Below are positions 9,701 to 26,596 of a DNA stretch of 64,000 nucleotides, piece by piece. The stretch lies in sequence record MF360958.1. One strand, given 5' to 3'. The position numbers were made by a program, and so were the translations under genes. The notes under the pieces were generated by a model that saw nothing but the letters and a program-made list of their open reading frames with translations, ran no database searches and was not told where the DNA came from. Numbering within the stretch: position 1 is the stretch's first letter; every line of letters begins with the position of its first letter.

Positions 9701-12700
9701 TTCATTAATACCCATATTTTCGTCAGCTTCAATTTGATTAGAACGAAGAATTCTTTGAAATGCTTCTGAAGTACCTTTTTGACGAATAAATCCTGAGTAA
9801 AATTGAATTTGTGATTTTTCATCCATATTAATATTTTCAAGATAACTACGATTTTCAAAACCAATATTATGGTATTTTAATGTATTGAAAATATATTGTG
9901 TGGATATAGAATCCATATCATTAATTGTTTTTAAATCAGTTATAGAAGATTCAAAATTAGGTAATAATCTATTATCTAATATAATATATCCATTAGCTTC
10001 TAACTTACCGTTCCAATCTTTTGTTTTTCGTGCATTAACTTGTAGACGTTCTTTTCTAATACCATAAAGAGGATTATATAATACATCAGAAAATATAGTA
10101 CGATTGTTAATAACCATTGCGTGTTCATATTCTCGTACATTCACACGAGCATAATATATAGGTCTTTGTGGAGTTATTTGAAAAACATCATTTTCTCTAT
10201 TAAAAGTATTTTCAGAAGGTGTAATAATACGACTTCTGTTATCTAGTAGAGTTATTTTATTTTTATTATAATTTCTAGAAATACTTGGAACACCATGATC
10301 ACTTTTAAAACGTATATTCATAGATGATGGGGATAATGAGATAACGGAACCTTCATTTTTATTTTCATAAGCCCATTGAATAAATTCTTTAACGGATAAT
10401 TCCCAATTTTTATAAATATTACGATTTTTATCACGTTCATCAAATAACCACCCTCTAGATTCTAAATAACGACCATAAGCAATAATAAATTCAGAAACAT
10501 CTTTTTCATTTCTAAATGTAGTTCCGTAAGGAACTACATTTAGAATACTATCATCACCCTCAATGCCTACCGTTGTTTTAGCAATATTCGTATAAGGAAT
10601 ATTTTCAACAATTGTCCAATATTCATTATCAAATGACTGCCCGGATTTATGTTTTTCTAATGCTCTTATTAATTTTCCATTTGGTAACGTTCTGTATTCT
10701 CCTTGTTCATAATTGGTTAAAGGCTCCCATTGTTTTGCATCAATAGCTTCCGACTCATTTGTAATAGATGTGATTGTTTTTTTCTTTCCAGAAGTTTTTG
10801 CTGGGATTGTTTTAAACTGTGAACCATATGGATCATAACCATATACTTTAAATACAGTATATTTAGGATCGGGAGCATCAAACATTAATGCCCATTCTGA
10901 ATCAATGAATCCTCTTAGTTCCCAATAATTCGAATCTGTAGGTGGAATATTCTGTGGTGAATGATCAACTATGCAATTCCATATTGTATTATTATAAATA
11001 ACCGCACGATTTTTAACATATGTCGTTTTTTCATTCCACTCAGGATAATCATATAAGCTTTTTACATTTTTATAGTAACTATCATCATTAGAAATATAGA
11101 CTATATCGCCCTTTTGATATAGTTCTCCTTTGATAAAATTAAGGTCTTTTCTATTAGGAGCGACACGTTCTATAATAACACCACTATAAACTTCTTCTCT
11201 TATATCCTTACTTTCATGAACAAAAACATTAATATCATCTTCTGGTAAAGAACTATTAACATTTCCGCTTCTAGGATTATAGGATTCACTTATAATTCGT
11301 AGATTCTGAGTATCAATGTATCCTCCTAATTTATGACCTAAAACTACATTAATGCCATTAAATGCATCAATCATAATATCTTCAACAGATTCATCATTTT
11401 CACGTATATAATCATGTATCCATTGAGTAACACCGGGAACATAGTTATTATTTTTTTGGTTATTAATTTCATAATTAATAACATTTGGGAAAAATGTAGA
11501 ATTCTTACTATATGTTTCAAATGTATTCCATGCTTTATTAATATAATCCAGTGGTTTTAATAGATAATGAACAATTTGTTTAGCATAAAAATAATCACTT
11601 TGACGTTTCCATGATTGTTCTACTGGACCTAGATCCCCATATTCCCAAGGCTGCGAAGCATTATAATAAGTTGGATAGTTATTAAACAAACCTAATTCCA
11701 CAGGATCTTTTAATGTACCATCATTTTTAACTGGTATAAGTTCTTTTAATCCAATTCTACGATATATATTATCAACACTCATATATCTCATATTTTCAGC
11801 ATTGGATCGTTCACCTTGGCGTATTATACCTTGTTCAAGATCGTTCCAAAGTTGAACGTTATTAGATGAGTAATCTGAACCGTATTCATTATCCCACCAT
11901 GCTGGTTTAATACTGAATCCAAGCATTTCCCACGGTCTTATATCAGGTCGATGGGTGTCATATAAGTATTCATATATACCTTTCCAATGTCCGGGTAATT
12001 TACTTCCATGTAATGAATAATTATAGGTCCAAGGGTTATCTTCATCATATTGGGTATTTTTTGAATAATTAACATTGTTATTATAGGACCAAATATGAAA
12101 TATATTAAATTCTGTATTTTTAAATTGTTCTAAATCATAACTTGATTTTCTAAAGTAACCTTCTTTAAGATAATTATAATCAAAATATTTTTTTTCTGTT
12201 TCAATAAAATCTTTATCAATGCCGTTATATATTCTTTTTTCAAATTCTAATAGAATTAAATCTCTAGGATCTAAATCATTTTCTTCAATCTGATTATAGT
12301 TTGAATATACTGGCGTTTTAGAGCCATCATGTCCAATAATGAAATGTTGTTTATTTTTAAAACTGTCGTCTTCTATAATCTCAGGTTTGAATGGTTTTTC
12401 AAGACCAAATTTAGCAGGTGTCGAAGGACAAAAAGATGGATCCATATCTTCATAATAACGAATTTCATCAATATCAGAAATATCAAAACTTTTAGGAATG
12501 ATTTTAGTTTCACCTACAATATCATCAATACTTATTTCATAATCAATATCTCTAATTTTAATACCTTCATTAGTAAAAATATAAAGTTCATTGTTAATTG
12601 GTTTTGTGTCAGCAAATTCGTTTAATTTACCATTATTATCAATTTCTAAATTGATAAACTTACGATATGTTCCAAACATATATGTTTGAGAGAATGTTTG

Positions 12701-15193
12701 ACGTGTTGTTTTACCTAAATTTATATTGCCAATAATTTTATCAAAGACATCACGCACATTTTGCTTATTAATATGCTTATTTTTCATTATATCTTCAGTA
12801 TTTAAAACAATTAGATTTTTAAATGACGAATATGCTCTCATGGAATTATAAATGCTGTCTACAATATCACGAGAGTTGTTATCATTAATAAACATTAAAG
12901 GAACCATAGAATTATCATGCTTTAGTACCTTATTGCCTTTAGAACGATCTTTTACTGTATCTCTGAAATTATTTTCACTTAATGAACTTCCTTTAATATA
13001 GTGTTGATTAAAGATTATTGATCTAAAATGATTAAATATTTCTGTGAATGCAAATTGCTCAACATTTTCGTTCATAGGATTATTAGACAGAGAATCCTGA
13101 ATCATTTGAATTGCTTCATTAGGATAATGTTCAATTCTTTCAAATGTTTCATATTTAACTTCTAAATAATCACCGCTTGATAAATTATCATTTAGTGGAT
13201 AAATTTTTAAATCTTCAAAATAAAAATCTTCATCTTTAATTAATCGATCACCATTTAATTCTACTTCAAAATTATCATTTTTAGGAATAAATTCAAATTC
13301 TAAATGAGGCCGTCCTGAATTAATATCCTCATCATTAAATACTTTTTTCTGTAGAAATGTTGTTAAATTACTGGTTTTTTCTTCCCAAATATCTTTATAT
13401 AATTCATCTTCAATAATATCATCTTCAATAATAATATAACCTGTTTTTGAACCTATAGTATAAGTATAAATATTATTTTCTGATTTATTTTTATCATATG
13501 AAAATTCAATATTTCTTATATTATTTGAATTATCGCCATTAACTTCATCGATAATTTTTTTACCATTACTATCTTTAATAGATATTGAATTATATTTTCC
13601 TGACCATCCTCTCGGGGTTGTAGTTGTATCTGAAAAATCAAATTTATATTGTATATTTTCTTTTAATATTAAGTTAGGTAACTTTTCATCATTAATATAA
13701 ATAGTTGGTTCATCATTTTCATCTTTATGAATAGTAAATAAATAAATATTATCAGATGTTATTTTTTCAGGATTTAACTTTTTATAAAAATGATTATTTA
13801 TTGTATGAGATACACCTCCTGCCTCATAAGAATATTGTTCATCCATAAAGTTTTCAAAAACAATATCAGAAGATTCTTGGAATGTTTTATATAATATATT
13901 CAAATCTAAATATTCATCATAAATTCCATCTTGTATGTCCGTTTTATAAGAAAATATTTTATTTCCTTTAAAATCACTATTCGGATAGCGATAAGGATCA
14001 TTGAGAAGTGTAGCTTTGCTTGAATCATTGTTATCATACAAATTAAATAGTGGTGCTTGTGTTGAATGGATTTTTTGTTGACATTGAATCCAACTATGAG
14101 TTTGTTCATCCCACTTAAATTCATCAGCTTTATAATTACCATCAAGAATTGTTACTTTATAACCATCATTTACTTTATCATATTCTACAAAATTATTACC
14201 ATCATAACGATAGATTTTAGGATTCCCTTCTTGGATTGCTAAGTCATTTACTTGAACAATCACTCCATCTGTTGCTATAGAAAGATTATTAGAAAATAAA
14301 GTTACATATTCATAAGGTGTATTTGAATAATTATAAAGTTCTATGTTTTTATCAAAACATATAATAGGACGTTTAGCTTGGCGTTCTCTACTTGCACTAA
14401 AACGTTCTTGTCCTACTTGTTGGTTCACCACATCTCTATGATACCAACAATTATTACGGCTCCATGGATTATCATCTAGACTTCCTCTTTCCATTGTAAT
14501 GTATTCAGCAGGAAAACGATCAATTAAATCTTGTATTTCATTATCTGCTATTTGAAGTCGATCAATACGTTTAGGTTTATTATTTTCTAAGGAAAATTCT
14601 ATAAGATTTATAAAACGTCCCACACCTTCAACAATGTATTCCTTATCATCATTAAGAATAATATGATGGCCACTACTAAGCATTATGTACTGATTAGATT
14701 CAGTAATCGTTGCTTGATATTGTGTTTTTCCAATAATATCTTCAGGTTGAGCATTAACATGAAAGGCCATAATTCCTTCAGGATACCAATAATAATTATT
14801 AAAGTTTATAAACATATCCATGTCTATAGGAGGGGCATAAGAGTAACTTTTTGAATTAAAAATACGATTATGATCAGATACATATGACCCTTTTGACTCT
14901 AAATTATTAAGTAAATCTTCATAAAACGTAGCAGATTTAATTTCACCACTATCAACATCTTTTATAACAAGTGTTTGTTCGAGTTGATAATCTTCACGAA
15001 TCTTACGATCTTCTTCTGAATAATAATCTTTAAATGGTTGAAACAATCCTCCGGGTGTTCGACCTATGTAAAATGGTACATCTTCGGAATTCTTCGATGT
15101 AAACAACGTTTCAGTTGTTGAATCCATGAAGTTACGGATTTTATTTGTACGAAATTGTCTAGGGAGAAATTGTTTAACATTTTTATTTGTCAT
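3770..15193 (-). CDS. Giant baseplate wedge-like structural protein (3807 aa) with inserted LamG-like and CBM5/12-like domains
   Basis: Size, position and N-terminal FLPRQFRT..YIGR..YQLE..DMFINFNNYYW pattern typical of the very large jumbo-phage baseplate protein; RBS AAGGA upstream. Confidence 0.7.
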   Translation of the reverse strand: MTNKNVKQFLPRQFRTNKIRNFMDSTTETLFTSKNSEDVPFYIGRTPGGLFQPFKDYYSEEDRKIREDYQLEQTLVIKDVDSGEIKSATFYEDLLNNLESKGSYVSDHNRIFNSKSYSYAPPIDMDMFINFNNYYWYPEGIMAFHVNAQPEDIIGKTQYQATITESNQYIMLSSGHHIILNDDKEYIVEGVGRFINLIEFSLENNKPKRIDRLQIADNEIQDLIDRFPAEYITMERGSLDDNPWSRNNCWYHRDVVNQQVGQERFSASRERQAKRPIICFDKNIELYNYSNTPYEYVTLFSNNLSIATDGVIVQVNDLAIQEGNPKIYRYDGNNFVEYDKVNDGYKVTILDGNYKADEFKWDEQTHSWIQCQQKIHSTQAPLFNLYDNNDSSKATLLNDPYRYPNSDFKGNKIFSYKTDIQDGIYDEYLDLNILYKTFQESSDIVFENFMDEQYSYEAGGVSHTINNHFYKKLNPEKITSDNIYLFTIHKDENDEPTIYINDEKLPNLILKENIQYKFDFSDTTTTPRGWSGKYNSISIKDSNGKKIIDEVNGDNSNNIRNIEFSYDKNKSENNIYTYTIGSKTGYIIIEDDIIEDELYKDIWEEKTSNLTTFLQKKVFNDEDINSGRPHLEFEFIPKNDNFEVELNGDRLIKDEDFYFEDLKIYPLNDNLSSGDYLEVKYETFERIEHYPNEAIQMIQDSLSNNPMNENVEQFAFTEIFNHFRSIIFNQHYIKGSSLSENNFRDTVKDRSKGNKVLKHDNSMVPLMFINDNNSRDIVDSIYNSMRAYSSFKNLIVLNTEDIMKNKHINKQNVRDVFDKIIGNINLGKTTRQTFSQTYMFGTYRKFINLEIDNNGKLNEFADTKPINNELYIFTNEGIKIRDIDYEISIDDIVGETKIIPKSFDISDIDEIRYYEDMDPSFCPSTPAKFGLEKPFKPEIIEDDSFKNKQHFIIGHDGSKTPVYSNYNQIEENDLDPRDLILLEFEKRIYNGIDKDFIETEKKYFDYNYLKEGYFRKSSYDLEQFKNTEFNIFHIWSYNNNVNYSKNTQYDEDNPWTYNYSLHGSKLPGHWKGIYEYLYDTHRPDIRPWEMLGFSIKPAWWDNEYGSDYSSNNVQLWNDLEQGIIRQGERSNAENMRYMSVDNIYRRIGLKELIPVKNDGTLKDPVELGLFNNYPTYYNASQPWEYGDLGPVEQSWKRQSDYFYAKQIVHYLLKPLDYINKAWNTFETYSKNSTFFPNVINYEINNQKNNNYVPGVTQWIHDYIRENDESVEDIMIDAFNGINVVLGHKLGGYIDTQNLRIISESYNPRSGNVNSSLPEDDINVFVHESKDIREEVYSGVIIERVAPNRKDLNFIKGELYQKGDIVYISNDDSYYKNVKSLYDYPEWNEKTTYVKNRAVIYNNTIWNCIVDHSPQNIPPTDSNYWELRGFIDSEWALMFDAPDPKYTVFKVYGYDPYGSQFKTIPAKTSGKKKTITSITNESEAIDAKQWEPLTNYEQGEYRTLPNGKLIRALEKHKSGQSFDNEYWTIVENIPYTNIAKTTVGIEGDDSILNVVPYGTTFRNEKDVSEFIIAYGRYLESRGWLFDERDKNRNIYKNWELSVKEFIQWAYENKNEGSVISLSPSSMNIRFKSDHGVPSISRNYNKNKITLLDNRSRIITPSENTFNRENDVFQITPQRPIYYARVNVREYEHAMVINNRTIFSDVLYNPLYGIRKERLQVNARKTKDWNGKLEANGYIILDNRLLPNFESSITDLKTINDMDSISTQYIFNTLKYHNIGFENRSYLENINMDEKSQIQFYSGFIRQKGTSEAFQRILRSNQIEADENMGINEEWAFKEGEFGSLINNQTTEYVLNRMDYISSPQNIILRYNGYGEDITPSYNDILIESSNRDKWLKFPSRFSQYEKIWTEDRLSNLKVMPTAGYVNYYDVDYTAFSLSELNTKIINSGKELQPKQYAWIARDGYSGYGFNVYISQEDKNITVKDIEIYGEEDISSMILRLNNVEENSIYSLYNLGYKYTFTFKRVDENDNLFIALPYDNSTYITLNEDLTKDDLNNSTFIIWKPLRINKFYNTIYNDIQDTIDRFIQKNNIDVFDGLKLFIDSVNSNVSYKQSILESSALEYWTFDNKEDSTFIGHINDISLTTNSDYAFENPNNGLILGDKSLKGGTNYDPSNNNWPQSFWADLGNHLNLSNKEKSIQFWINNGEFSYRYNQSVSTTIASIVGVDLDTSNTYTVQLMVDPPIVGSEWSYKIVYMVNDIIDQELDAIIESGYNQIVLNYKNINGKVHIESFINGLNFEELVSSSVINVDNNVLWYTVIGDSAEPESDMPYIDHVSVYDYALDLKDIQEQYDIALETIKNENKRNRWAVYYFNSGKWNLDYKEQDVIDCNLMKDITVYESNTNNLVTHLNIFDPIKGFYPSSLINYIDYFTEYDPANYHLNDSDNNSYWTDSKVGTLWLDTSKLRYIEYENFDIETRNNLWGSLFPGSEVHVYEWIKTKVLPENIEDQSVILDTTKYTIGSEYDVLTDNYIEYYYYWVKNNINVPETSNRNVNAVDIANSIKYPENNGTGYIQFLRNDIFSIIDINNDLVDNDTVIQINYRLGYNEQSRNHSQWKLLSRNSKEIPEYLFNNMVDSLLGYTEPSDQNPEGLKVPNPNLAPNNRYGNDRVKRQSWFYNAQNARKIFYEVINNVLKYINLWDTDIFWERRVDNVKRDTELYSLVDWYKEDFDPDTIVRNKIKDRNFLNSIPLEDGEHIAVNETAEQNTYINEKTTVIYRYIKEYNTYEKVFQTRSALSFNPIIYKRELTAQEAIEMRRILNVIFNYILIGENKDTIFELFFRLVEQIFVEQPNNDWVYPSTYISINQKTNTLTKSNVYRQNREQQIIDYVNEAKPFHTKLRTINRTHTREPENIGLFVTDFDKPPYLTEDKDQIILQEYVTEKIRYRKNEYYYHKIMNSNPYEYWSMNNIQDNKNIQGLYGNDFILNDNPEIINIEQNEGISYTNNICLSGTSNYSYTNTLKNFETNSFNIEWWFTSPNNLSEGRNSFVLIKFNNNNKVNTIEFVIDVDADNIWQYKVIFVNSLNENIEINLNLIFNNKANYISIGYSNGDIRLYNNNRLASETSIEFLEVLNSDIEVMFGNNNTNDIVCFDEIAIYPRMISKNEAIIHYNAGDIERPQNEFELQKIHDLESIEVYIEDQKLPKDSYQIIGNTLIFNNIVQEPINYYNNITVRSNNLDHINILNNYKNTRGYMSVNQDNLKNWKSTVNQKSSTIVFDRISLLPTFSLEQLLKIKNNIDNSDKPLEKLTNYSLYNHDNPKQTLSEIDRIIIQHHSDLLENIVNETKTIFVNSKTKKNISIDNSHNKDNISVFINDIYINERYYKINTKNGKTNLEFVNKLYKGDVVKVRSKDDYRTLIQKSSEIRGVGIPYHNIDEINELPFVINSNTSPIKLNDNGELIIEQDYIDDLEESNIEPTLVESNSDFNNSSANNIRHNTPFIETSHRGVPEEKSSLNFKESMCVTYKNNLKLVPRGYETSIPLNIFETVTFNSDGTETEYPINLNVHKEQVMVLVNDDEWVMDDEENNIQYHYELRPNKIIFHKSLNYKDKVVITDRYSAFDRYGGNENDDYGINVQGGYDSNMILPNYLNDINNPDHEHAVHEYREFVLYNYSGKVFLFKCDEKDAINVKSHIHPDEHSIELETITDKLKPVNNENGKLLALYASRMNNDKLEHSFVEFIHYKTINNNNRTLEDVKRSIFSTGRKYFDIDKYHVKAYPIDIENQMPQFTILEPYIGINSQRSYPKYGHIMSGKD

Positions 15194-15270
15194 TACTCAT
15201 TATATCCTTTTTATCTGTTAAAGTCTTAATTATTTATGGTTTAAATCTTCAGAGTCAATTTAAAAATGTA

Positions 15271-16317
15271 TTAAGTTGATCCGCCACAGTATCCTTCAAC
15301 ACAAATATCAATATTTGCTGAATCGCTATTATTAGAATCATACTTTATAACATACTGCTGTGATAACTTAACCCTAAAGTTTTCCATCGTTGTTGTCAAT
15401 TCATTAGCTGTATTAACATTATCATAATCACCATTTGTTTCATCAGCAATTTGTTTAAATACATTTTCATCAAAATTAGAACCAAAAGCAATTAAAAATA
15501 CTGGTATGGATGCATTTTTTGCTGAATCGATAGCATCTTGTAATGTATTATTTGAACTCCCATCGTTACCATCAGTTATTACCATTAACGCATTTTGCCG
15601 ACTGCTGGATTTTATTTCATTCACAGCTGTAATAATTGAATCATATAATGCGGTTGAACTTCCTACATCCGATGGGTTATTAATTGCATCTTTTAGATCA
15701 GATGCATTACTAGTTAAACTTTGATCAAGAGAAGCATCACCTCCGAAATTAATTATTGCTGCTTTATCAGAACTATTTAATTTATCTATTAGATTCGATG
15801 CACCTGTATTCATATCGGATTGGTAATCTGAAAATGATCCAGATCTATCTAGAGATATACCAATATCAACAAATTTATTTAAATCACCACTTGTTGAAAA
15901 TGTATAATTAGATATTTCAGAACCATTCTCAGTAACACCACAAATATCTTCACTTGTTATATCAGTAACAGACTCCCCCGTGTCGGGATCAATTACATCA
16001 AAATAAACTTCTGTTGTAGAGCCACTATTAATTTTCTCAATTTGTCTAATTTTGACGCCTTCTCCAACTACAGATATTGTTTTTGATATTGATGTAGAAT
16101 CAACAGTTGCTGTTAATGTTAATTGTTCATTTAATATGTCTGTTGAAACAGTAAGATTGCCTTGCGAATCCACTGTTCCTATACTATTACTAGTAGACCA
16201 TGAATCTACATTGATATCATCGCTTATTGTACCATCACCTTCTCGTTTTAAAACATTATATTGATGGCTGCTTCCTGCACAAATTCTTTTTGGACCATCT
16301 AAAATTAAATTACTATA
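15271..16317 (-). repeat. vWA module copy 2 (C-terminal); direct repeat of 18220..19272
   Basis: Near-identical DNA to copy 1 at a 2955-bp offset. Confidence 0.95.
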
Positions 16318-19300
16318 TAATATTTGTATATCTTTACTATCGTTTATTTCCCCATCACTAATATTAATTGTTATTACATCCTGATTGTTTGAGTTATTAC
16401 TATCAGGGGTTTCTAATGTAACCGTATCACCGCTTACTGAAACAGAACCTATATTACTTGAAACACTGTAATTTTTAGTAGAATCATAATTAGTGATTGT
16501 ATATTCATAGGTTTTGTTGGATTCAACGGGATCAGGCCCATCTAATAATATTCCATCATAAAGATAGGTCACATCTTTACTACCATTAACTCTACCATCA
16601 GTTATATCAATTGTGATTGTTCTTTCTTCAAAATTACTATTAGGGGTTTCTAATGTAACCGTATCGCCATTAACTGAAACACTTCCTATATTACTTGACA
16701 CATTGTAATTTTTAGTAGAATCATAATTAGTGATTGTATATTCATAGGTCTTATTGGACTCAACGGGATCTGGTCCATCTAATAATATCTCATCATATAG
16801 ATAGGTCACATCTTTACTACTATTTACTGTGCCATCAGTTATATCAATTGTGATTGTTTTATTGCTATCGTTACTATCAGGAGTTTCTAATGTCACTGTA
16901 TCGCCATTTACTGAAACATTTCCTATATTAGTTGAAACACTATAATTTTTGGTAGAATCATAATTAGTAATCGTATATTCATAGGTTTTGTTGGATTCAA
17001 CGGGATCTGGTCCATCTAATCCTATGTCATTATATAGATAGGTCACATCTTTACTACTATAAACATCCCCATCATTTATATTAATTGTGATTGTTCTTTC
17101 TTCAAAATTACTATTAGGGGTTTCTAATGTAACCGTATCGCCATTAACTGAAACACTTCCTATATTACTTGACACAATGTAATTTTTAGTAGAATCATAA
17201 TTAGTGATTGTATATTCATAGGTCTTATTGGATTCAACCGGATCCGGCCCATCTAATAGTATTTCGTCATATAATAACTGTACATTTTTACTACCATTTA
17301 CTGTTCCATCAGTTATATCAATTGTGATTGTTTTAGTTGAATCATTATTATTAGGGGTTTCTAATGTCACTGTATCACCACTTACTGAAACAGAACCTAT
17401 ATTACTTGACACATTGTAATTTTTAGTAGAATCATAATTTGTGATTGTATAGTAATATGTATTATCTGTTAAAACATTATTTGGTCCATCTAATAATATC
17501 TCATCATATAGATAAGTCACATCGTGTTTACTTGAAACATCTCCATCAGTTATATCAATTGTGATTGTTTTAGTTGAATCATTACTATTAGGGGTTTCTA
17601 ATGTCACTGTATCACCACTTACTGAAACAGAACCTATATTAGTTGAAACAGTGTAATTTTTACTAGGAAAATAATTAGTGATTATATATTCATAGATTTT
17701 ATTGGATTCAACTGGGTCTGGGCCATCTAATTTTATGTCATCATATAGATAAGTCACATCGTGTTTACTTGAAACATCTCCATCAGTTATATCAATTGTG
17801 ATTGTTTTAGTTGAATCATTACTATTAGGGGTTTCTAATGTCACTGTATCACCACTTACTGAAACATTTCCTATATTAGTTGAAACACTATAATTTTTAG
17901 TAGAATCATAATTAGTGATTGTATATTCATAGGTCTTATTGGATTCAACTGGATCCGGGCCATCTAATAGTATTTCGTCATATAATAACTGTACATCTTT
18001 ACTACCATTTACTGTACCATCAGTTATATCAATTGTGATTGTTTTAGTTGAATCATTATTATCAGGGGTTTCTAATGTCACTGTATCATCATTAACTGAA
18101 ACAGAACCTATATTACTTGACACATTGTAATTTTTATTTGGTTGATAATTAGCAATAATGTAATTATAAGTATTAGATGGTTTGACAAATTCTGGACCAT
18201 TCAATAAAATCTCATCATAAACATAAGAATTTGATCCACCACAATATCCTTCAACACAAATATCAATATTTGCTGAATCAGTATTATTAGAATCATATTT
18301 TATAACATACTGTTGTGACAATCTAACCCTAAAGTTTTCCATCGTTGTTGTCAATTCATTAGCTGTATTAACATTATCATAATCACCATTTGTTTCATCA
18401 GCAATTTGTTTAAATACATTTTCATCAAAATTAGAACCAAAAGCAATTAAAAATACTGGTATAGATGCATTTTTTGCTGCGTCTATAGCATCTTGTAATG
18501 TGTTATTTGAATTGCCATCGTTACCATCAGTTATTACCATTAACGCATTTTGCCGACTGCTGGATTTTATTTCATTCACAGCTGTAATAATTGAATCATA
18601 TAATGCGGTTGAACTTCCTACATCTGAAGGACTATTAATTGCATCTTTTAGATGGGATGCATTACTAGTTAAACTTTGATCAAGAGAAACATCGCCTCCG
18701 AAATTAATTATTGCTGCTTTATCAGAACTATTTAATTTATCTATTAGATTCGATGCACCTGTATTCATATCGGATTGATTATTTGAGAATGATCCAGATC
18801 TGTCTAGAGATATACCAATATCAACAAATTTATTTAAGTCGCCACTTGTTGAAAATGTATAATTAGATATTTCAGAACCATTCTCAGTAACACCACAAAT
18901 ATCTTCACTTGTTATATCAGTAACGGATTCACCTGTGTCGGGATCAATTACATCAAAATAAACTTCTGTTGTAGAGCCACTATTAATTTTCTCAATTTGT
19001 CTAATTTTGACGCCTTCTCCAACTACAGATATTGTTTTTGATATTGATGTAGAATCAACAGTTGCTGTTAATGTTAATTGTTTACCTGATGTGTCTGGTT
19101 TTATACTAACATTACCTTGCGAATCCACTGTTCCTATACTATTACTAGTAGACCATGAATCTACATTAATATCATCGCTTATTGTACCATCACTATGTTT
19201 AAGAGATAGGTTATATTGATGAGTGCTTCCTACACAAATTCTTTCTGGACCATTTAATAATATTTCATCATATAAGTAAGTTATATCTTTACTACCATTA

Positions 19301-22300
19301 ACTCTACCATCGGTTATATCAATTGTGATTGTTTTTTCATTATCATCAAAATTACTATCAGGGGTTTCTAATGTAACAGTATCGCCATTAACTGAAACAC
19401 TTCCTATATTACTTGAAACAGTGTAATTTTTACTAGAATCATAATTAGTAATTGTATATTGATAACTATTATTGGATTTGACGGTATCAGGTCCGTCCAA
19501 TAATATTTCATCATATAAGTAAGTTATATCTTTACTACCATTTACTGTACCATCAGTTATATCAATTGTAATTGTTTTAGTTGAATCATTACTATTAGGG
19601 GTTTCTAATGTAACCGTATCACCACTTACTGAAACACTTCCTATATTACTTGAAACATTGTAATTTTTAGTAGGTTCATAATTAGTGATTGTATATTCAT
19701 AGGTCTTATTGGACTCAACGGGATCTGGTCCATCTAATAATATCTCATCATATAGATAAGTTACATTATGATCACTAAATACAGTCCCGTCATTTATTTC
19801 AATAGTAATTGTTTTCTCTTCAAAATTACTTTCAGGAGTTTCTAATGTAACCGTTTCGCCATTTATTGAAACAGAACCTATATTACTTGAAACACTGTAA
19901 TTTTTGGTAGAATCATAATTAGTGATTGTATATTCATAAATTTTGTTGGATTCAACCGGTTCTGGGCCATCTAATAATATATCGTCATAGAGATAAGTCA
20001 CATCATGTGTACTATGAACCCAACTATCATTTATTTCAATAGTAATTGTTTTCTCTTCAAAATTACTTTCAGGAGTTTCTAATGTAACCGTATCACCACT
20101 GATTGAAACAATGCCTATATTAGTTGAGACATTGTAATTTTTACTAGGGAAATAATTAGTAATTGTATATTCATAGGTTTTGTTGGATTCAACGGGATCA
20201 GGCCCATCTAATAATATTTCATCATATTTTATAGGATCTACAGTAATGCAACGCACCGTATTAGTATGTCGTTCAAATGTCCATAACTCATAACCATTTG
20301 GATGGATTTTCTTTGCTGTTCTATCATTTGATGCACTATATATGTTAGTTTTATAGTCAGTTTCTAATCCATATACAACACTATTATGACCATCATAAGA
20401 CCATATTTCATTTCCACGAGGATCAAGTTTCTTAATTGTTTCATCAATGGAAGCACTGTAAATATTTTCATTATGGTCAGTAGCTACATCAAGTATTGCC
20501 GCTGAATGGCCAGTAAATGACCATAATTCATCGCCATCTAAGCTTATTTTACGTACTGTATTATCTAATGAACCACTAAATAAATATGCATCATAATAAT
20601 GCAACGCAAGACAACGAATACCATTTGTATGTTCTTCGTATGACCAAAGTTTTTCAGCTATTGAATTTAATTTTCTAATTGATCCATCTTTTGAACCTGT
20701 ATAAACATTTCCATCTTTATCAATATCAATAGCCCATATTTCATCATTATGACCATAATAAGTCCATATATGTTCACCGTTTGATTTTAATTTTTTAACA
20801 GTAGTATCTTTTGAACCTGTATAAACATTCCCTTCATCATCTACGACAACTTTATATATATTATCATTATGACCATAATAAGTCCATATTTTATTAAAAT
20901 CATTATCAAATTTTTCTACTATGTCATCTCTACTGCCAGTATAAATATTTCTATCTTTATCAATATCAATAGAATAATTAGTATTTGGACTAGAACTGTG
21001 AGAGTAAATTTCATAACCATTATTATCTAATTTACGAATAGTATTATCAAATGAAGCGGTATAAATGTTTATACCATTAGCATATTCTATATCATAAGTA
21101 TATTCTGTAGAAACATTTTCATCTGATATTGTTATTGTCGTTGCATCTACTGTATTTAAATCAGTTAAATCAACAATAAGCTCATCTTCATTTATAGTTG
21201 CATTACCTATTGAAGCAGATGCTTGATAATTTCGATGTGGTTCATGATTTATAATTTTATATTTATAAATCTCTCCGGCTTGCAATACATCTGGCCCTTG
21301 TAATATAATATCATCATATAGATAAGTTACTGTATGGTCAGAATATACTTTTCCATCATCTATACTAATAGTTAAATTTCGTTCTTCTGTATTATAATCT
21401 GGTGTTTTTAAAGTAATTTTATCATTATTAATACTTATATTTCCTATATTAGATGATACATTATAGGACTGACTAGAATAATAATTCACTATGGTATAAG
21501 TATATTCTTTATCGGATTTGACAGGATCAGGACCATCAATTTTTATTTCATCATAAGAACCATCACCTTTAACATTATATTGATATTGTGTTGAAATATG
21601 TTGATCAGTAATAATTACGTTAGCAATATCGGTTAATCTTACATTAGTTAAATCTAATGTAAGAACATCTTCTGAAACTGAAACTTCGCCTAAATCTGTA
21701 GTAGCACTGTAATCTCGCTGAGGGAAATAATTATCAATGGTATATGTATAAACATTTCCAGCATCAAGATTATCTGGACCAATAAGTATAATTTTGTCAT
21801 AATCTTCATGATCATCAACATTATAACTATAATCTGTTGACACATAGCCATCAGTAATCGTAATATCTACAATACCTCCTAGAGTAAATCCTTTAAGATC
21901 TAAAATTAATTTATCATCTTTAATTTCAACATCACCCATTGATGTTACCGCATTATAAACTTTATTAGGATCATAATTATCAATGGTATATGTATAGATA
22001 TTCCCCACTTGTAATTGTTGAGGACCAACAAGTATAATTTTGTCATACTCATTTGTTACTACTACAGGGTTAACAGCCACATCGTATACAGGGGCTGTAT
22101 GCCCTTTGTATTCCCAAATAATACTGTTTCCATAAGGCTCAAATTTTCGTACTATGTGATCCTCGGAGCCTGTATAAATATTTGAATTTTCATCGACAGA
22201 TAATGCCCATATATTATGTTCTAATTTATCATATGACCATATAAAAGTACCTTGATTATCATACTTTCTAATACGATCATCATGTGATACGATATAGAAA

Positions 22301-24561
22301 TTATCTTCATTATCAATTTCTATATCACGTATAGAATGGTAATCTTGAGTTTCTATATCCCATAATTTATCACCATTAGAATTAATTTTATGAATCTCAT
22401 TATCAAAAGAAGCACTAAATATATTATTATTACTATCTACTGCTAAGCCTGTAACCGTATTATTGTGAATACCATAGATCCAAATATCATTTCCATTTTT
22501 ATCTATTTTTCTTATGGTTTTATCAGAACTGCTAATGTAATTATTATAATCAAAATCTAAAATAATATCTCTTATTCTACTATTATTTTTTTCATAAACC
22601 CATAGTTCATTTCCATTGGCGTCTATTTTTCTAACTGTATTGTCAAAAGAACCGCTATATATATTTTTATCTTCATCAACAGTTAAAGTCCAAATAATAT
22701 CCATATGCCCTTTAAATGTCCATAGTAAATTTCCATAAACATCTAGCTTTTTAATTGTATGATCGGCAGACCCACAATAAATATTTCCGTAATTATCAAT
22801 ATCAATACACCATACTGTGTTTATAAAACCACCATAACTCCATAATAATTGACCATGCATATCTAACTTTTTAACAGTATTATCAGCAGATACACTATAA
22901 ACAGCACCATTTAAATCTTTAACTAGTTGTTTTTCTACATCATAATCGTATTCAGTAGATAATATATCATTTGAAATAGTTAGATTTAATACATCAGGAG
23001 AAGTTATATTTGTTAAATCAACAGTTATTTTTTCACCATCAATGGTAATATCGCCAATATTACTATTGACTTCATAATTAGAATTTAAATCATAATTATC
23101 AATTGTAAGTGTGTATATATTTCCTGCTTGAAAAATTTGAGGACCATTTAATATAATATCATTTTTATCTAGATACATAATATTATAAGAGTATTTTGTA
23201 GAAACATTAACATCCGATATAGTTATTTCTACAGTATTTTCATTATTAATATTTGTTAAGTCTAATTTTATTTCATCATGTTCAATTATCGCATTTCCTA
23301 CGTTAGTAGTAACATTATATTGTCTATTATAATTGTAATTATATATATATAAACTATTAACTTTACCAGCTATGAGTGTTTTTGACAGAGGATGTAATAT
23401 GATATCATCATAAAGAAAAGTAACATTATGTGTTTTATAAGAATCTTCGTTATCAACAATAATAGATATTATTTGCTCATTATTATTTTCAGATGGAGTT
23501 TCCAAAGTCAACTTATCTTGAGACAAAGAGACTTTGCCTATATTCGTTGAAACATTGTAATTTTTTAATGAATCATAATTTGTTATTATAAATTCATAAC
23601 TATTATTTGATTTTACAGAATTAGGTCCATCAATAACAATTTCATTATAGTCAAATGCAACAGTATGATTTGAAGTTATAGATCCATCAGTTATTGTTAT
23701 AACAATCTCAGTTTCAGAACGATTACCTGAAGGAGTTTTTATAATAACCCTGTTTTCATCAATTGCACTTTGACCAATATTTGTACTTACTGTGTATGTT
23801 TTATTTGGATCGTAATTAGCTATAGTAAACTCATATGTTTTAATTGATTCAACTCTTTCAGGACCATTTAGAACTATTTCATTATATCCAGTTACACCAT
23901 TGACTGATATAATATAATTAGATGTATAAGATTCTGTTGTTATTGTTAATATTAAATTATTATTAACGCTACTTGGAACATCAATATTAATAGTATCTCC
24001 ATCCAGTGTTGCTGTTCCTTCACTAATCGAAATATTATAATTAGCAAAACTGTTATAGTTTGTTATTGTATATTGATAGCTATTTCCTGTATTAACACTC
24101 ACAGGGCCATTTAATGAAGGGCGAAATTCATTCTCAATATTATTAATATGGAAACGGCTCCAGTGTATTTCACCTTTATCGTTCGTTCCAACTAAAGTTT
24201 TGGGTTCTCTAGTTATACTAACCGGGATGTCTTCATTGATGTCGGTTATTTTATTTTTAATTATATTTGTGTCTACATAATTATCAGCATAAGCTTTATT
24301 GATAAGAGACTTATTATCATCAAAATCAGTAACTTTAAGATAACCTTTCATAACATTGTTATCTTCATGAAGATAACGTTCATATAAATCTTCTAGAGTA
24401 TGATCATGAATACGTTCAGCATAAATGTTTTTGTTATTATATTTGCCAGCCAGTATCCCAAAATCCACAATATCATCTATATAATGATAATGTTCATTAG
24501 CAATATCTTCATGAATTATTCTTTCACCATTAATTTTAGAGTCTTTTATTATTCGCCCCAT
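15271..24561 (-). CDS. Giant modular adhesin/fibre-like protein (3096 aa): about 21 Ig-like repeats, 2 seven-bladed beta-propellers, 2 vWA modules
   Basis: Repeats directly visible in protein and DNA; vWA MIDAS motifs DRSGS, TALYD, TDG present twice; lies within the late structural operon. Confidence 0.85.
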   Translation of the reverse strand: MGRIIKDSKINGERIIHEDIANEHYHYIDDIVDFGILAGKYNNKNIYAERIHDHTLEDLYERYLHEDNNVMKGYLKVTDFDDNKSLINKAYADNYVDTNIIKNKITDINEDIPVSITREPKTLVGTNDKGEIHWSRFHINNIENEFRPSLNGPVSVNTGNSYQYTITNYNSFANYNISISEGTATLDGDTINIDVPSSVNNNLILTITTESYTSNYIISVNGVTGYNEIVLNGPERVESIKTYEFTIANYDPNKTYTVSTNIGQSAIDENRVIIKTPSGNRSETEIVITITDGSITSNHTVAFDYNEIVIDGPNSVKSNNSYEFIITNYDSLKNYNVSTNIGKVSLSQDKLTLETPSENNNEQIISIIVDNEDSYKTHNVTFLYDDIILHPLSKTLIAGKVNSLYIYNYNYNRQYNVTTNVGNAIIEHDEIKLDLTNINNENTVEITISDVNVSTKYSYNIMYLDKNDIILNGPQIFQAGNIYTLTIDNYDLNSNYEVNSNIGDITIDGEKITVDLTNITSPDVLNLTISNDILSTEYDYDVEKQLVKDLNGAVYSVSADNTVKKLDMHGQLLWSYGGFINTVWCIDIDNYGNIYCGSADHTIKKLDVYGNLLWTFKGHMDIIWTLTVDEDKNIYSGSFDNTVRKIDANGNELWVYEKNNSRIRDIILDFDYNNYISSSDKTIRKIDKNGNDIWIYGIHNNTVTGLAVDSNNNIFSASFDNEIHKINSNGDKLWDIETQDYHSIRDIEIDNEDNFYIVSHDDRIRKYDNQGTFIWSYDKLEHNIWALSVDENSNIYTGSEDHIVRKFEPYGNSIIWEYKGHTAPVYDVAVNPVVVTNEYDKIILVGPQQLQVGNIYTYTIDNYDPNKVYNAVTSMGDVEIKDDKLILDLKGFTLGGIVDITITDGYVSTDYSYNVDDHEDYDKIILIGPDNLDAGNVYTYTIDNYFPQRDYSATTDLGEVSVSEDVLTLDLTNVRLTDIANVIITDQHISTQYQYNVKGDGSYDEIKIDGPDPVKSDKEYTYTIVNYYSSQSYNVSSNIGNISINNDKITLKTPDYNTEERNLTISIDDGKVYSDHTVTYLYDDIILQGPDVLQAGEIYKYKIINHEPHRNYQASASIGNATINEDELIVDLTDLNTVDATTITISDENVSTEYTYDIEYANGINIYTASFDNTIRKLDNNGYEIYSHSSSPNTNYSIDIDKDRNIYTGSRDDIVEKFDNDFNKIWTYYGHNDNIYKVVVDDEGNVYTGSKDTTVKKLKSNGEHIWTYYGHNDEIWAIDIDKDGNVYTGSKDGSIRKLNSIAEKLWSYEEHTNGIRCLALHYYDAYLFSGSLDNTVRKISLDGDELWSFTGHSAAILDVATDHNENIYSASIDETIKKLDPRGNEIWSYDGHNSVVYGLETDYKTNIYSASNDRTAKKIHPNGYELWTFERHTNTVRCITVDPIKYDEILLDGPDPVESNKTYEYTITNYFPSKNYNVSTNIGIVSISGDTVTLETPESNFEEKTITIEINDSWVHSTHDVTYLYDDILLDGPEPVESNKIYEYTITNYDSTKNYSVSSNIGSVSINGETVTLETPESNFEEKTITIEINDGTVFSDHNVTYLYDEILLDGPDPVESNKTYEYTITNYEPTKNYNVSSNIGSVSVSGDTVTLETPNSNDSTKTITIDITDGTVNGSKDITYLYDEILLDGPDTVKSNNSYQYTITNYDSSKNYTVSSNIGSVSVNGDTVTLETPDSNFDDNEKTITIDITDGRVNGSKDITYLYDEILLNGPERICVGSTHQYNLSLKHSDGTISDDINVDSWSTSNSIGTVDSQGNVSIKPDTSGKQLTLTATVDSTSISKTISVVGEGVKIRQIEKINSGSTTEVYFDVIDPDTGESVTDITSEDICGVTENGSEISNYTFSTSGDLNKFVDIGISLDRSGSFSNNQSDMNTGASNLIDKLNSSDKAAIINFGGDVSLDQSLTSNASHLKDAINSPSDVGSSTALYDSIITAVNEIKSSSRQNALMVITDGNDGNSNNTLQDAIDAAKNASIPVFLIAFGSNFDENVFKQIADETNGDYDNVNTANELTTTMENFRVRLSQQYVIKYDSNNTDSANIDICVEGYCGGSNSYVYDEILLNGPEFVKPSNTYNYIIANYQPNKNYNVSSNIGSVSVNDDTVTLETPDNNDSTKTITIDITDGTVNGSKDVQLLYDEILLDGPDPVESNKTYEYTITNYDSTKNYSVSTNIGNVSVSGDTVTLETPNSNDSTKTITIDITDGDVSSKHDVTYLYDDIKLDGPDPVESNKIYEYIITNYFPSKNYTVSTNIGSVSVSGDTVTLETPNSNDSTKTITIDITDGDVSSKHDVTYLYDEILLDGPNNVLTDNTYYYTITNYDSTKNYNVSSNIGSVSVSGDTVTLETPNNNDSTKTITIDITDGTVNGSKNVQLLYDEILLDGPDPVESNKTYEYTITNYDSTKNYIVSSNIGSVSVNGDTVTLETPNSNFEERTITININDGDVYSSKDVTYLYNDIGLDGPDPVESNKTYEYTITNYDSTKNYSVSTNIGNVSVNGDTVTLETPDSNDSNKTITIDITDGTVNSSKDVTYLYDEILLDGPDPVESNKTYEYTITNYDSTKNYNVSSNIGSVSVNGDTVTLETPNSNFEERTITIDITDGRVNGSKDVTYLYDGILLDGPDPVESNKTYEYTITNYDSTKNYSVSSNIGSVSVSGDTVTLETPDSNNSNNQDVITINISDGEINDSKDIQILYSNLILDGPKRICAGSSHQYNVLKREGDGTISDDINVDSWSTSNSIGTVDSQGNLTVSTDILNEQLTLTATVDSTSISKTISVVGEGVKIRQIEKINSGSTTEVYFDVIDPDTGESVTDITSEDICGVTENGSEISNYTFSTSGDLNKFVDIGISLDRSGSFSDYQSDMNTGASNLIDKLNSSDKAAIINFGGDASLDQSLTSNASDLKDAINNPSDVGSSTALYDSIITAVNEIKSSSRQNALMVITDGNDGSSNNTLQDAIDSAKNASIPVFLIAFGSNFDENVFKQIADETNGDYDNVNTANELTTTMENFRVKLSQQYVIKYDSNNSDSANIDICVEGYCGGST
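16318..18219 (-). repeat. Tandem array of 8 Ig-like units (237 bp / 79 aa; last unit 81 aa)
   Basis: Consensus YDEILLDGPDPVESNKTYEYTITNYDSTKNYxVSSNIGSVSVxGDTVTLETPxSNxxxKTITIDITDGxVxxSKDVTYL; 1902 bp = 7x237 + 243. Confidence 0.95.
18220..19272 (-). repeat. vWA module copy 1 (Ig-like + linker + vWA, 351 aa)
   Basis: Near-identical to 15271..16317. Confidence 0.95.
19273..20226 (-). repeat. Tandem array of 4 Ig-like units
   Basis: 954 bp = 3x237 + 243; same consensus as the 8-unit array. Confidence 0.95.
20230..21075 (-). repeat. Seven ~40-aa WD40/PQQ-like blades (beta-propeller 2)
   Basis: Repeat [IV]YTGSxDxT[VI][RK]K[LI]xxxGxxxWxYxGHxxx[IV]xx[IV]x[IV]DxxxN x7; 120-bp DNA periodicity at 20691/20811/20931. 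Confidence 0.9.
22065..22915 (-). repeat. Seven ~40-aa WD40/PQQ-like blades (beta-propeller 1)
   Basis: Same blade consensus x7, from GAVYSVSADNTVKKLD to VYDVAVNP. Confidence 0.9.
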
Positions 24562-24562
24562 A

Positions 24563-26551
24563 TTATATTAGTCTCCATAGAGAATTTTCTTTATAATCAT
24601 AAATATATAGATATCCATATCTATCCGTTCCAAGAGGATAATCATATGGTTCTTTATATTCAAAATAGTGTTTATATTCTCCTATTTTCTGAAAAGATTC
24701 CATTTCGGGGTAATATTCATAAAAATTATGATCTTTATCCTCATAATTATCTTCACCCCCAAATATAAAGAATTTATCATCATGTTTAACACTATTATGA
24801 AAAATCTTATTTATATCAGTATTATTATTTATAACTTTCCAACTACCATGTATAATATGATATTTCCAAAAAATACTACCTCTATTACTATTAACCAAAA
24901 CATCACTATCAAAAGAATAATTCATACCATGTACATAAATACGACCTTTATAATATTCACATATATGTCCTTTTAATGAATTTTTAAAAGGTATTGGTGA
25001 AGAATGCTTTCTCCACGTATCGGTGTTTATATCATATTCATAAATATAATCATTAAAAACATTATTTGAAATAGATTCCATTCCTCCAACTAAATAGATA
25101 TGATTTATGCCATCTGTTGTGACATCATGATATATGGTATTAATTGGAAGATTATTCATTTTTTGAAATCCAGTATTATAACGATTTATACGAAACATAA
25201 CACTAGATGCTTCTAAACCATTACTAGATGAATCATTATAGTTGTTACTACCCCCAATTACATATATGTAATCCCCAATAACTGTCATTTTACAAAAGGC
25301 TGTAAAAAAATCACTTTGCGGAGGTTCATTTAACAAATTTTCCCATTTATTATTATAAATGTCATACTTATACACTTTAAAACGGTATTGTGATCCTGTA
25401 TTTTGTATACCAGTTAAATATAAGAAATTAAACTCTTTATCAATAGCTATATCACCATATTTCAAATCTTCAGGTCCATCGTTTTCAAGTGTTTTTTTCC
25501 AAATTTCATCAAGCATTGTGGGAGGACTGGAATTTAATGTTGTATTATTTAAATACCCTATAAAATCAATATTAAAATCCACAGCATTTCCATTTTTAAT
25601 TACTGTTAATGTGACATGCCTGTTATCATTTATTTCATTGACACTTATATTAATTGTGTCACCATTAATAGATGCATTACCATCTGTGATACGCACACTA
25701 TAATTAGAAAACACATCATAATCAGTAATAGTATACGTATAATTTCCACCAGAAATTATTCTTCTAGGGCCATCAAGAGAAATATTTTCTGTTAGACTTG
25801 GTTTAAATTGTAACCAACTGCGATCAATTATACCTTGATTATTTGTTTTTATAATTCCATAAGGTAATGACTTTTCAACTATAGGATGGCTTTTTAACCA
25901 TTTATAAGGCTCATATTTTTTTATTGAACTTATTTCTCCTGAAGAATTAGTTATTATTTCTGCAATAATATATTTATTTGAAGTGTTTTGAAAATAATTT
26001 TTATTCAACGTTATATCTACAACATCATTTTTTTGATCATATTCAATGACAACATAAATTTTTAAATTATTAATATTACTAAGATTGGTTATATCTAATT
26101 TTTTATATGATATATGATATTCACGTCCTTTTATAAAAATATAACAAGAATATATTTCAATATTAACATTATTAGTTTTATTGATATCAAAACTATAACT
26201 ATCTATAGATACATATGGGTTATAAGTTAAATATGTTGGATTATTTTTATAAATATAGTCTTCAAAATATTTTTTATTAATAGCTGAATCTGGATCAGAT
26301 TCAATCACATTATCAACTAACAAATTGCCTTCTACTTCATCTCCTAGAATATTAATAAAATTATCTTCGAAATCATTGAAATGATAACCGTCTAATCCAT
26401 CTACATTAAGATTTTCACCGGGACCATCATCTTTTATAGCACTAGAACCGCTTCCTATTATTTGTGAACTATCATGCGTATGTAATGATTTGGTTTTATG
26501 TGTAATGATTTCAAAACCACCTATAGTCGAACCTTTTCTTAAATTAGACAT
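24563..26551 (-). CDS. Fibre-like protein with one Ig-like unit and a C-terminal Kelch-repeat propeller
   Basis: 662 aa; Kelch motifs YIYVIGG, IYLVGG..YEYDINTDTW, GRIYVHG, KFFIFGG; N-terminal motifs shared with the 3096-aa protein. Confidence 0.75.
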   Translation of the reverse strand: MSNLRKGSTIGGFEIITHKTKSLHTHDSSQIIGSGSSAIKDDGPGENLNVDGLDGYHFNDFEDNFINILGDEVEGNLLVDNVIESDPDSAINKKYFEDYIYKNNPTYLTYNPYVSIDSYSFDINKTNNVNIEIYSCYIFIKGREYHISYKKLDITNLSNINNLKIYVVIEYDQKNDVVDITLNKNYFQNTSNKYIIAEIITNSSGEISSIKKYEPYKWLKSHPIVEKSLPYGIIKTNNQGIIDRSWLQFKPSLTENISLDGPRRIISGGNYTYTITDYDVFSNYSVRITDGNASINGDTINISVNEINDNRHVTLTVIKNGNAVDFNIDFIGYLNNTTLNSSPPTMLDEIWKKTLENDGPEDLKYGDIAIDKEFNFLYLTGIQNTGSQYRFKVYKYDIYNNKWENLLNEPPQSDFFTAFCKMTVIGDYIYVIGGSNNYNDSSSNGLEASSVMFRINRYNTGFQKMNNLPINTIYHDVTTDGINHIYLVGGMESISNNVFNDYIYEYDINTDTWRKHSSPIPFKNSLKGHICEYYKGRIYVHGMNYSFDSDVLVNSNRGSIFWKYHIIHGSWKVINNNTDINKIFHNSVKHDDKFFIFGGEDNYEDKDHNFYEYYPEMESFQKIGEYKHYFEYKEPYDYPLGTDRYGYLYIYDYKENSLWRLI

Positions 26552-26588: not shown

Positions 26589-26596
26589 TATTTATA
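26589..26596 (-). promoter_or_regulatory. T4-type late promoter TATAAATA for the structural operon
   Basis: Exact TATAAATA on the minus strand, 37 nt upstream of the ATG at 26551; gp55 is encoded in this window; this 8-mer also occurs by chance in AT-rich DNA. Confidence 0.65.

Follow-up and report, generated by a model that had tools for sequence, protein, structure and literature searches.

Domain organization of gene 141

The DNA analyzed here (hereafter the window) is a stretch of 64 kb that matches Salicola phage SCTP-2 (MF360958.1) with 100% identity; a window position equals the record position minus 124000. SCTP-2 is a jumbo myovirus of Italian saltern origin with a genome of 440,001 bp. 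The subject of this work is its gene 141 (15271-24561, minus strand), delimited from the list of open reading frames (ORFs), its translation and the match to the record. The gene is annotated as hypothetical and encodes a multidomain protein of 3,096 aa, gp141, in an uninterrupted reading frame of 9.3 kb. Within it falls the span 16318-20226, which a preliminary description, made from the sequence alone, had interpreted as a periscope-like, recombination-prone stalk of tandem repeats.

All features of the gene lie on the minus strand. The protein starts with an N-terminal domain of about 105 aa (24247-24561), the presumed attachment end, recognized in alignments A2 and A3 (not to be confused with the repeat units of the same names). 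It is followed by five diverged immunoglobulin (Ig)-like units (aa 147-542, 22936-24123; 18-88 bits with a hidden Markov model, HMM, of the unit), a first β-propeller (aa 543-838, 22048-22935; Pfam WD40 and Beta-prop_ACSF4), four more diverged Ig-like units (aa 839-1161, 21079-22047; 35-98 bits), and a second β-propeller (aa 1162-1445, 20227-21078; Pfam WD40 with an E-value of 4e-34, and Beta-prop_WDR3_1st). The remaining half consists of array B with units B1-B4 (aa 1446-1763, 19273-20226; 138-149 bits), module 1 (aa 1764-2114, 351 aa, 18220-19272), array A with units A1-A8 (aa 2115-2748, 16318-18219; 133-152 bits), and the C-terminal module 2 (aa 2749-3096, 15274-16317). The units of both arrays are 79 or 81 aa long. 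In each module, an Ig domain resembling Big_2 is joined to a small β domain and a von Willebrand factor type A (vWA) head; module 1 was assigned from Pfam VWA_2 and VWA_3 matches, and module 2 from an AlphaFold2 (AF2) model, Foldseek matches and a metal ion-dependent adhesion site (MIDAS). In total, gp141 contains 21 Ig-like units, two β-propellers and two vWA heads. The repeat region has a GC content of 26-30%, the same as that of the flanking DNA, and a foreign origin of this region was therefore rejected.

Repeat arrays and the 2,955-bp super-repeat

Tandem Repeats Finder resolved two arrays with a period of 237 bp, one at 16389-18136 (7.4 copies, 84% matches, score 2289) and the other at 19250-20227 (4.1 copies, 82% matches, score 1144), and no further large tandem arrays in the window. 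The unit HMM recovered exactly twelve high-scoring units (133-152 bits, 79-81 aa), split 4 + 8, so that the twelve units of the preliminary description, their period and their ends were all reproduced. The nine units in the N-terminal half score just 18-98 bits, in agreement with the earlier remark that they are much more diverged. An identity of about 129 bp that had been pointed out within array A is exact: 17501-17629 equals 17738-17866 across precisely 129 bp. The repeats are also in frame, as had been proposed: the ORF is intact, and all exact direct repeats of at least 30 nt in the gene (56 of 56) have offsets divisible by 3. Fifteen exact in-phase tracts reach 50 nt or more, the longest being 148 nt.

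One element of the preliminary description did not hold. Module 1, the 351-aa Ig-vWA module, lies between the arrays, so the twelve units form two arrays and not one stalk, and the interrupting module is itself part of a larger repeat. Modules 1 and 2 share 94% of their nucleotides and 91% of their amino acids, and exact tracts of 148, 139, 110 and 83 nt recur at a constant offset of 2,955 bp, which defines a super-repeat. In its register, B1-B4 plus module 1 pair with A5-A8 plus module 2; the units directly preceding a module (B4 and A8) are both 81 residues long. The number of synonymous substitutions per site (dS) is 0.15-0.23 between the two modules and 0.20 between B3 and A7, whereas the pairs B1/A5, B2/A6, and B4/A8 reach 0.53-0.62. 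These values fit one segmental duplication that would have spanned at least the stretch from B3 through the module; the higher divergence of B1/A5, B2/A6, and B4/A8 is presumably due to their having been overwritten since then.

Exchange among the repeat units

The units had been described as mosaics in which sub-blocks are shuffled, and recombination tests bear this out. The quoted sub-blocks are present and variously combined across the units (NDSTKT, NFEERT, or NFEEKT; TVNGSKDVQLL, DVSSKHDVTYL, or RVNGSKDVTYL). Over 114 polymorphic ungapped sites in the twelve units, the longest run of matching polymorphic sites comprises 63 sites (A2-A3), compared with a mean of 23 in 2,000 permutations, and exceeds the value of every permutation (p<0.0005). 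Many pairs are individually significant (e.g., B3-A7, B1-A8, and B1-B2), and several reach p<=0.0005. Single units switch their closest neighbor along their length. A8 differs by at most one mismatch from B1 over nt 1-60 and from B2 over nt 61-120, and is near B3 over nt 121-165; A7 equals B3 over nt 1-60 and then A5 over nt 61-210; A2 tracks A5, then A6, then A3. The Hudson-Kaplan lower bound on the number of recombination events (Rm) is 16. This statistically supported mosaic pattern indicates that intragenic exchange took place among the gp141 units. Unequal crossing-over itself produces hybrid units, so the mosaics are compatible with past changes of length as well as with gene conversion; both fit, and the data cannot tell them apart. 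A separate idea, that variable positions reflect shuffling of loops, was rejected, as these positions show no preference for loops over strands.

The units also cluster by gene. A tree built from 41 units of five SCTP-2 genes groups the twelve gp141 units in a single clade (support 0.945), apart from the close units of the paralog gp442. DNA identity between units averages 80.5% within gp141 and 80.6% within gp442, as against 73.2% between the two. As judged from the tree, this clustering is the result of concerted evolution or of an independent expansion in each gene.

Divergence of the units and selection

The earlier statement that the units are highly similar at the DNA level is true in part: the similarity is real, but pairwise DNA identity among the twelve units is only 69-93% (mean 80.5%). 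Neighboring units share 66-89% of their amino acids (about 77-78% on average). Mean dS is 0.51 and the mean number of non-synonymous substitutions per site (dN) 0.17, giving a ratio (ω) of about 0.33, and by this measure purifying selection preserves every unit individually. The youngest pair, A2-A3, still shows a dS of 0.12. On the evidence of synonymous divergence, the units are of far greater age than the repeats in classical periscope proteins, which are nearly identical.

Between modules 1 and 2, the first 64 codons, which encode the Big_2-like Ig domain, show a dN/dS of about 1.0 (dN 0.24), while the other 283 codons (β domain and vWA) show 0.09; dS is similar in both parts (0.15-0.23). 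The contrast between a conserved vWA part and a rapidly changing Ig domain in front of it suggests that the vWA heads are the functional elements.

Predicted folds of the units and the vWA heads

An AF2 model of units A5-A7, built from a 27-row alignment of three-unit windows, has a mean predicted local distance difference test (pLDDT) of 95.3 and a predicted template modeling score (pTM) of 0.75. Each unit folds as a seven-strand β-sandwich, and its final strand is followed directly, with zero linker residues, by the first strand of the next unit. Foldseek matches of the model include titin I65-I70, the S-layer protein SbsC, invasin and InvD, cadherins, and a tail protein of phage SU10, and those in BFVD include many phage 'Ig' and tail proteins. 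Structure matches in the Atlas comprise Big_9, cadherin-like, and BACON arrays, and all three domains of the model together superpose on linear tandem arrays (BACON and bacterial cadherin-like) with template modeling (TM) scores of 0.5-0.64 and a root-mean-square deviation of about 4.5 Å; the score with BACON is 0.61. No Pfam model covers the unit, except for a weak match to Ig_5. According to the model, the gp141 units are consecutive Ig-like β-sandwiches joined without linkers.

The model of the module (pLDDT 89, pTM 0.81) shows a β domain and a vWA fold. Its Foldseek matches include the A3 domain of von Willebrand factor (TMt 0.77), ITIH1, mussel PTMP1, and the vWA pilin PilB of S. sanguinis, and Pfam assigns VWA_2 (6e-17) and VWA_3 (3e-14). 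The MIDAS residues D-x-S-x-S, T and D (D157, S159, S161, T222, and D249 in alignment A4) are invariant in 34 homologs. They correspond to D2905, S2907, S2909, T2970, and D2997 of module 2, and the motif is intact in both modules.

Paralogs and relatives

At least five SCTP-2 proteins carry the unit: gp141 (21 units), gp442 (15), gp438 (6), gp142 (1), and gp99 (1). The range of 1 to 21 units across the family thus refers to paralogs and distant relatives, not to strains. The protein gp442 (3,456 aa; L004:6001-16371, record position about 354-364 kb) combines its 15 Ig-like units with RCC1-like and other β-propellers. A separate 237-bp array in its gene contains exact in-frame tracts of up to 160 nt, but the longest exact match between genes 442 and 141 is just 43 nt, which argues that each array has been homogenized separately. 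A further paralog, gp438 (P0004, named by position; L004:17579-20695), is 1,038 aa long. The 1,735-aa β-propeller protein gp99 (L005:8001-13208) carries a single Ig-like unit and matches 'virion structural protein' PHROGs; its gene lies a few genes downstream of those for the prohead protease and the major capsid protein, and it could be a head-associated fiber.

The unit, called 'TITNYD' here, occurs elsewhere in arrays of 7-19 copies, both in proteins of uncultured phages with tail-fiber-like N-termini (P0007 and P0012) and in FN3-rich surface (wall) proteins of actinobacteria (P0003 and P0014), and it may merit a separate domain family.

Searches for an ortholog of gene 141 with megablast and tblastn in 50,697 phage records returned SCTP-2 itself only. 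A word-index search of 5.8 billion proteins yielded just the same-genome paralogs gp442 and gp99 together with distant WD40 and actinobacterial proteins, and a HMMER search of 1.84 billion representatives added gp438, a relative from an uncultured phage (P0025), and many unrelated vWA proteins, with no ortholog among them. Scans of IMG/VR with residues 1-540 of gp141 or with the unit alignment found nothing; a scan with alignment A2 found two small relatives of the N-terminal domain. A scan of JGI metagenomes gave vWA proteins only, at 23-35% identity. Queries for sequencing runs listed none.

Gene context and the N-terminal domain

Gene 141 belongs to a co-oriented cluster running from gp142 to gp137 on the minus strand. 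Directly upstream lies the gene for gp142 (24563-26551), a 662-aa paralog in which the N-terminal domain of the family is combined with a single Ig-like unit and a β-propeller of the Kelch type. The stop codon of gp142 ends 1 nt before the ATG of gene 141, which is preceded by GGAG; the 1-nt gap suggests translational coupling. Downstream of gp141 is gp140 (3,807 aa, 3770-15193), which has no Pfam match and was assigned by PHROG 10938 and tblastn. It matches a 'virion structural protein' PHROG, and its homologs in jumbo phages, such as Atu_ph07 gp180 and those of PA5oct-like and Rak2-like phages, are annotated as virion structural; the gene for Atu_ph07 gp180 adjoins a baseplate wedge gene. 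The giant gene for gp140 is conserved, and the genes for gp141 and gp142 appear to have been added upstream of it in a lineage-specific manner. At the far end of the cluster, gp137 (92-1690) matches the family of the long-tail-fiber proximal connector (phrog_1154, E-value of 2.9e-70).

The first 100 or so residues of gp141 are common to gp142, gp438, and proteins of uncultured jumbo phages (P0025/L003, L006, and L007). The latter are 620-920 aa long; behind three to four units they have unrelated domains at the C-terminus, and their genes adjoin tail- or baseplate-type genes, such as one similar to T4 gp15. The N-terminal domain weakly matches, at the profile level, the C-terminus of phage hyaluronidase fibers (E-value of about 0.004), and its look-alikes in the Atlas include Phage_fiber_2 proteins, which is a lead only; when searched by sequence, neither the PDB nor Pfam yielded a convincing match to the domain. 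On visual inspection, no predictor having been run, the N-terminus of gp141 is unlike a signal peptide. Taken together, the gene context and an N-terminal domain shared with smaller fiber-like proteins point to a probable location of gp141 on the virion. Related phages of the SCTP-2 clade have been called 'hairy' for their whisker-like appendages (PMC6102473).

Divergently from the fiber cluster, a UvsW-like DNA helicase is encoded on the plus strand (26703-28187; record annotation and PHROG DNA helicase families), so the preliminary description was right in placing UvsW in the window. A sequence resembling a T4 late promoter, TATAAATA, lies 38 nt upstream of gp142 (26589-26596, minus strand), and CATAAATA is found at about 15229-15236 (minus strand) in the 77-nt gap before gp140. 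As a signal, the motif TATAAATA was rejected: its count in the window is no higher than expected by chance in a genome of 26-30% GC. Elsewhere in the genome, the gene for the large subunit of ribonucleotide reductase (L002:1103-3772, record position about 340.8-343.5 kb) contains an intein with a LAGLIDADG endonuclease domain (precomputed Pfam).

Parallels in known systems

Periscope Proteins (SasG/Aap, Rib, Sgo_0707, and CdrA; Whelan et al. 2021, PMC8201768) are defined by highly identical tandem folded domains with short linkers that form a rod-like stalk, vary in number between strains, and hold a distal domain off the bacterial surface. The screen reported there considered domains of more than 50 aa with at least 80% protein identity, and the largest variation was found at the highest DNA identity. 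gp141 resembles these proteins in several respects. Its repeats are folded domains of more than 50 aa (79-81 aa, pLDDT 95.3) with very short linkers, their in-frame similarity at the DNA level permits recombination, and the protein has a presumed anchor at one end and an adhesive domain at the other. The differences are equally clear. Neighboring units of gp141 are 66-89% identical, compared with 80-100% in the bacterial proteins, which is borderline and mostly below the threshold of the screen. The protein is encoded by a phage, and its array does not form a single stalk from a surface anchor to a distal domain on a bacterial surface; propellers come before it, and a vWA head inside it splits the units 4 + 8. 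Moreover, the periscope class is defined by variation in repeat number, and none has been observed for gp141, which is known from one genome. gp141 does not formally belong to the class: the label 'periscope-like' stands for the in-frame exchange and the folded, linkerless units, is borderline for the degree of identity, and does not hold for the single stalk. As an account of how gp141 could work, the analogy is reasonable; as its actual behavior, it is unproven. A full-text literature search found no paper that applies the periscope concept to phage virions.

A closer parallel is found in crAssphage, where a tail-associated array of about eight Ig-like (BACON) domains arose by serial internal duplication (PMC6949934). 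gp141 shares with it the origin from a phage, the position by tail genes, and a duplicated Ig-like array, the fold being that of phage tandem-array proteins. Positions in the BACON array separate into stable clades and are not homogenized, whereas those of gp141 are mosaics that group by gene, as expected under concerted evolution, and have also been copied together with a vWA head by segmental duplication.

Other parallels come from tailed phages and from pili. Tetart and colleagues reportedly found in 1996 (as cited in PMC3157838) that duplications of a small domain in the T4 tail-fiber adhesin gp37 change host range. This resembles gp141 in being an in-frame tandem duplication within a fiber gene of a T4-type phage, with a host-range phenotype; however, the duplicated piece in T4 is a short part of the trimeric, β-helical fiber tip and was obtained by laboratory selection, whereas gp141 has standing arrays of autonomous Ig-like domains. 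Ig-like domains are also displayed on decoration and fiber proteins of tailed phages, such as T4 Hoc, as reportedly described by Fraser and colleagues in 2006. Such β-sandwiches act as weak accessory adhesion modules and are similar to the gp141 units in this sense, but usually number 1-4 diverged domains, compared with the 21 units (twelve of them close), propellers, and vWA heads of gp141. Tip adhesins of Gram-positive pili, such as RrgA, are tipped by vWA domains. Like the minor pilin PilB and like RrgA, gp141 bears a vWA fold with an intact metal site at the tip of an elongated structure, be it a filament or an Ig-like stalk; the pilus subunits are assembled by a pilus machinery, while gp141 unites the stalk and two vWA heads in one phage polypeptide. 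Compared with periscope proteins, the closer kin of gp141 are tandem Ig-like arrays of tail-associated phage proteins that arose through serial duplication of domains. In view of the crAssphage arrays and the T4 gp37 duplications, the earlier suggestion that length-tunable adhesins have no precedent on phage virions was too strong.

Origin and dynamics of the arrays

With moderate confidence, gene 141 is taken to encode a giant modular fiber or adhesin, probably virion-borne, whose units were duplicated and then exchanged, with slow turnover. In such a protein, a short N-terminal attachment domain would be followed by the 21 'TITNYD' units acting as spacers, and four probable binding domains (two β-propellers and two MIDAS-containing vWA heads) would be spread along a long thin appendage. 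At about 4 nm per Ig-like unit, array A would span approximately 30 nm and array B approximately 15 nm. The twelve close units would have arisen by tandem duplication of single 237-bp units and by one segmental duplication of a block of units with its Ig-vWA head, leaving copies 2,955 bp apart. Later, gene conversion or unequal crossing-over would have partially homogenized and scrambled them, so that each unit became a mosaic of its neighbors. Because every homology tract is in phase, any later exchange would alter the protein by whole domains: a shift by multiples of 237 bp would add or remove domains of 79 aa, and a shift by 2,955 bp 985 aa including one vWA head, with a change in both valency and length. 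Judged by the mean dS of about 0.5, such turnover would be slow, and the array, kept by purifying selection, would not be a fast length switch. In this account, the repeat anatomy, the folds, the MIDAS motif, the mosaicism and the in-frame property are shown by the analysis, whereas the virion location, the role of the units as spacers, binding by the propellers and vWA heads, and any present-day variation in length are inferred.

Several observations weigh against it. A PHI-like test for the clustering of incompatible sites was not significant (0.477 observed, 0.475 permuted), a result probably explained by the high background of incompatibility (48% of all site pairs), and at a dS of about 0.5 some of the four-gamete incompatibilities could stem from recurrent mutation instead of exchange. 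The rod-like geometry of the arrays is suggested by superposition and not by an end-to-end distance. The similarity of the N-terminal domain to known fibers is weak, no homolog of gp141 was present in the related isolated phages searched, and the literature searched contained no SCTP-2 proteome and no direct evidence of gp141 in the virion.

That last point leaves room for gp141 to act in or on the infected cell, e.g., as a scaffold or surface modifier, and vWA domains are indeed also known from intracellular chaperone systems of jumbo phages (PMC7824862). Such a role is improbable, given that the gene is co-oriented with those for a tail-fiber connector and a conserved virion structural protein, that the N-terminus does not look like a signal peptide, and that Ig-like arrays combined with propellers and vWA domains are typical of extracellular adhesins. 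An error in the number or order of units, mis-assembled from short reads, is very improbable indeed: tandem repeats are a classic cause of collapse or expansion, but here every unit is distinct, the longest identical tract is no more than 148 nt, the 9.3-kb ORF is intact, and gp442, an independent paralog, has the same architecture.

The two other alternatives concern the tempo of change and lie on either side of the favored model of slow turnover. If gp141 were a true periscope, its arrays would often expand and contract by T4-type recombination, and a lysate would be a mixture of fiber lengths or head numbers, a form of bet-hedging for receptors that are reached through variable envelopes. 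This is possible but doubtful. It agrees with the in-frame tandem folded domains without linkers, the fifteen exact in-phase tracts of at least 50 nt (up to 148 nt), the clear footprints of past exchange, the similar array in gene 442 with tracts of up to 160 nt, the range of 1 to 21 units among family members, and the UvsW-like helicase encoded beside the cluster. Against it, the units are far more diverged (80.5% DNA identity, dS 0.51) than the near-identical repeats that vary most in bacteria, a vWA module interrupts the array, and differences in unit number are seen only among distant paralogs and relatives of a gene known from one genome. The same synonymous divergence, including the dS of 0.12 in the youngest pair, would suit a frozen array of fixed length, in which the similarity reflects old duplications under purifying selection (ω of about 0.33, each unit being maintained) and exchange is historical; the BACON arrays of crAssphage are likewise stable in order and number (PMC6949934). 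This alternative is unlikely, since tracts of 60-129 nt with 0-1 mismatch occur inside pairs that are otherwise 17-25% diverged, which argues for exchange well after the original duplications, and the mechanism of exchange would likewise yield changes in length. For SCTP-2 itself, it may be speculated, with little confidence, that T4-type recombination acting on the 237-bp and 2,955-bp repeats of gene 141 and on the array of gene 442 makes fibers differ per burst in length and in vWA heads.

Implications

Even without variation in length, gene 141 illustrates the construction of giant phage fibers from an Ig-like unit that lacks a Pfam model and that was probably multiplied both singly and in blocks with a binding head, and it would provide a clean case of concerted evolution within a phage gene. 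Should the arrays prove to vary in length, gp141 would be the first case on record in which a change in repeat number sets the reach and valency of a virion appendage. The periscope concept would then extend from bacterial surfaces to viruses, with a phage counterpart that tunes reach and avidity without point mutation, and jumbo phages would have a cheap route to heterogeneity in host range or adsorption. For the phage of a hyperhalophile, the domains of gp141 suggest candidate modes of adsorption: the vWA heads may bind in a MIDAS-dependent manner, and the propellers may bind carbohydrates.

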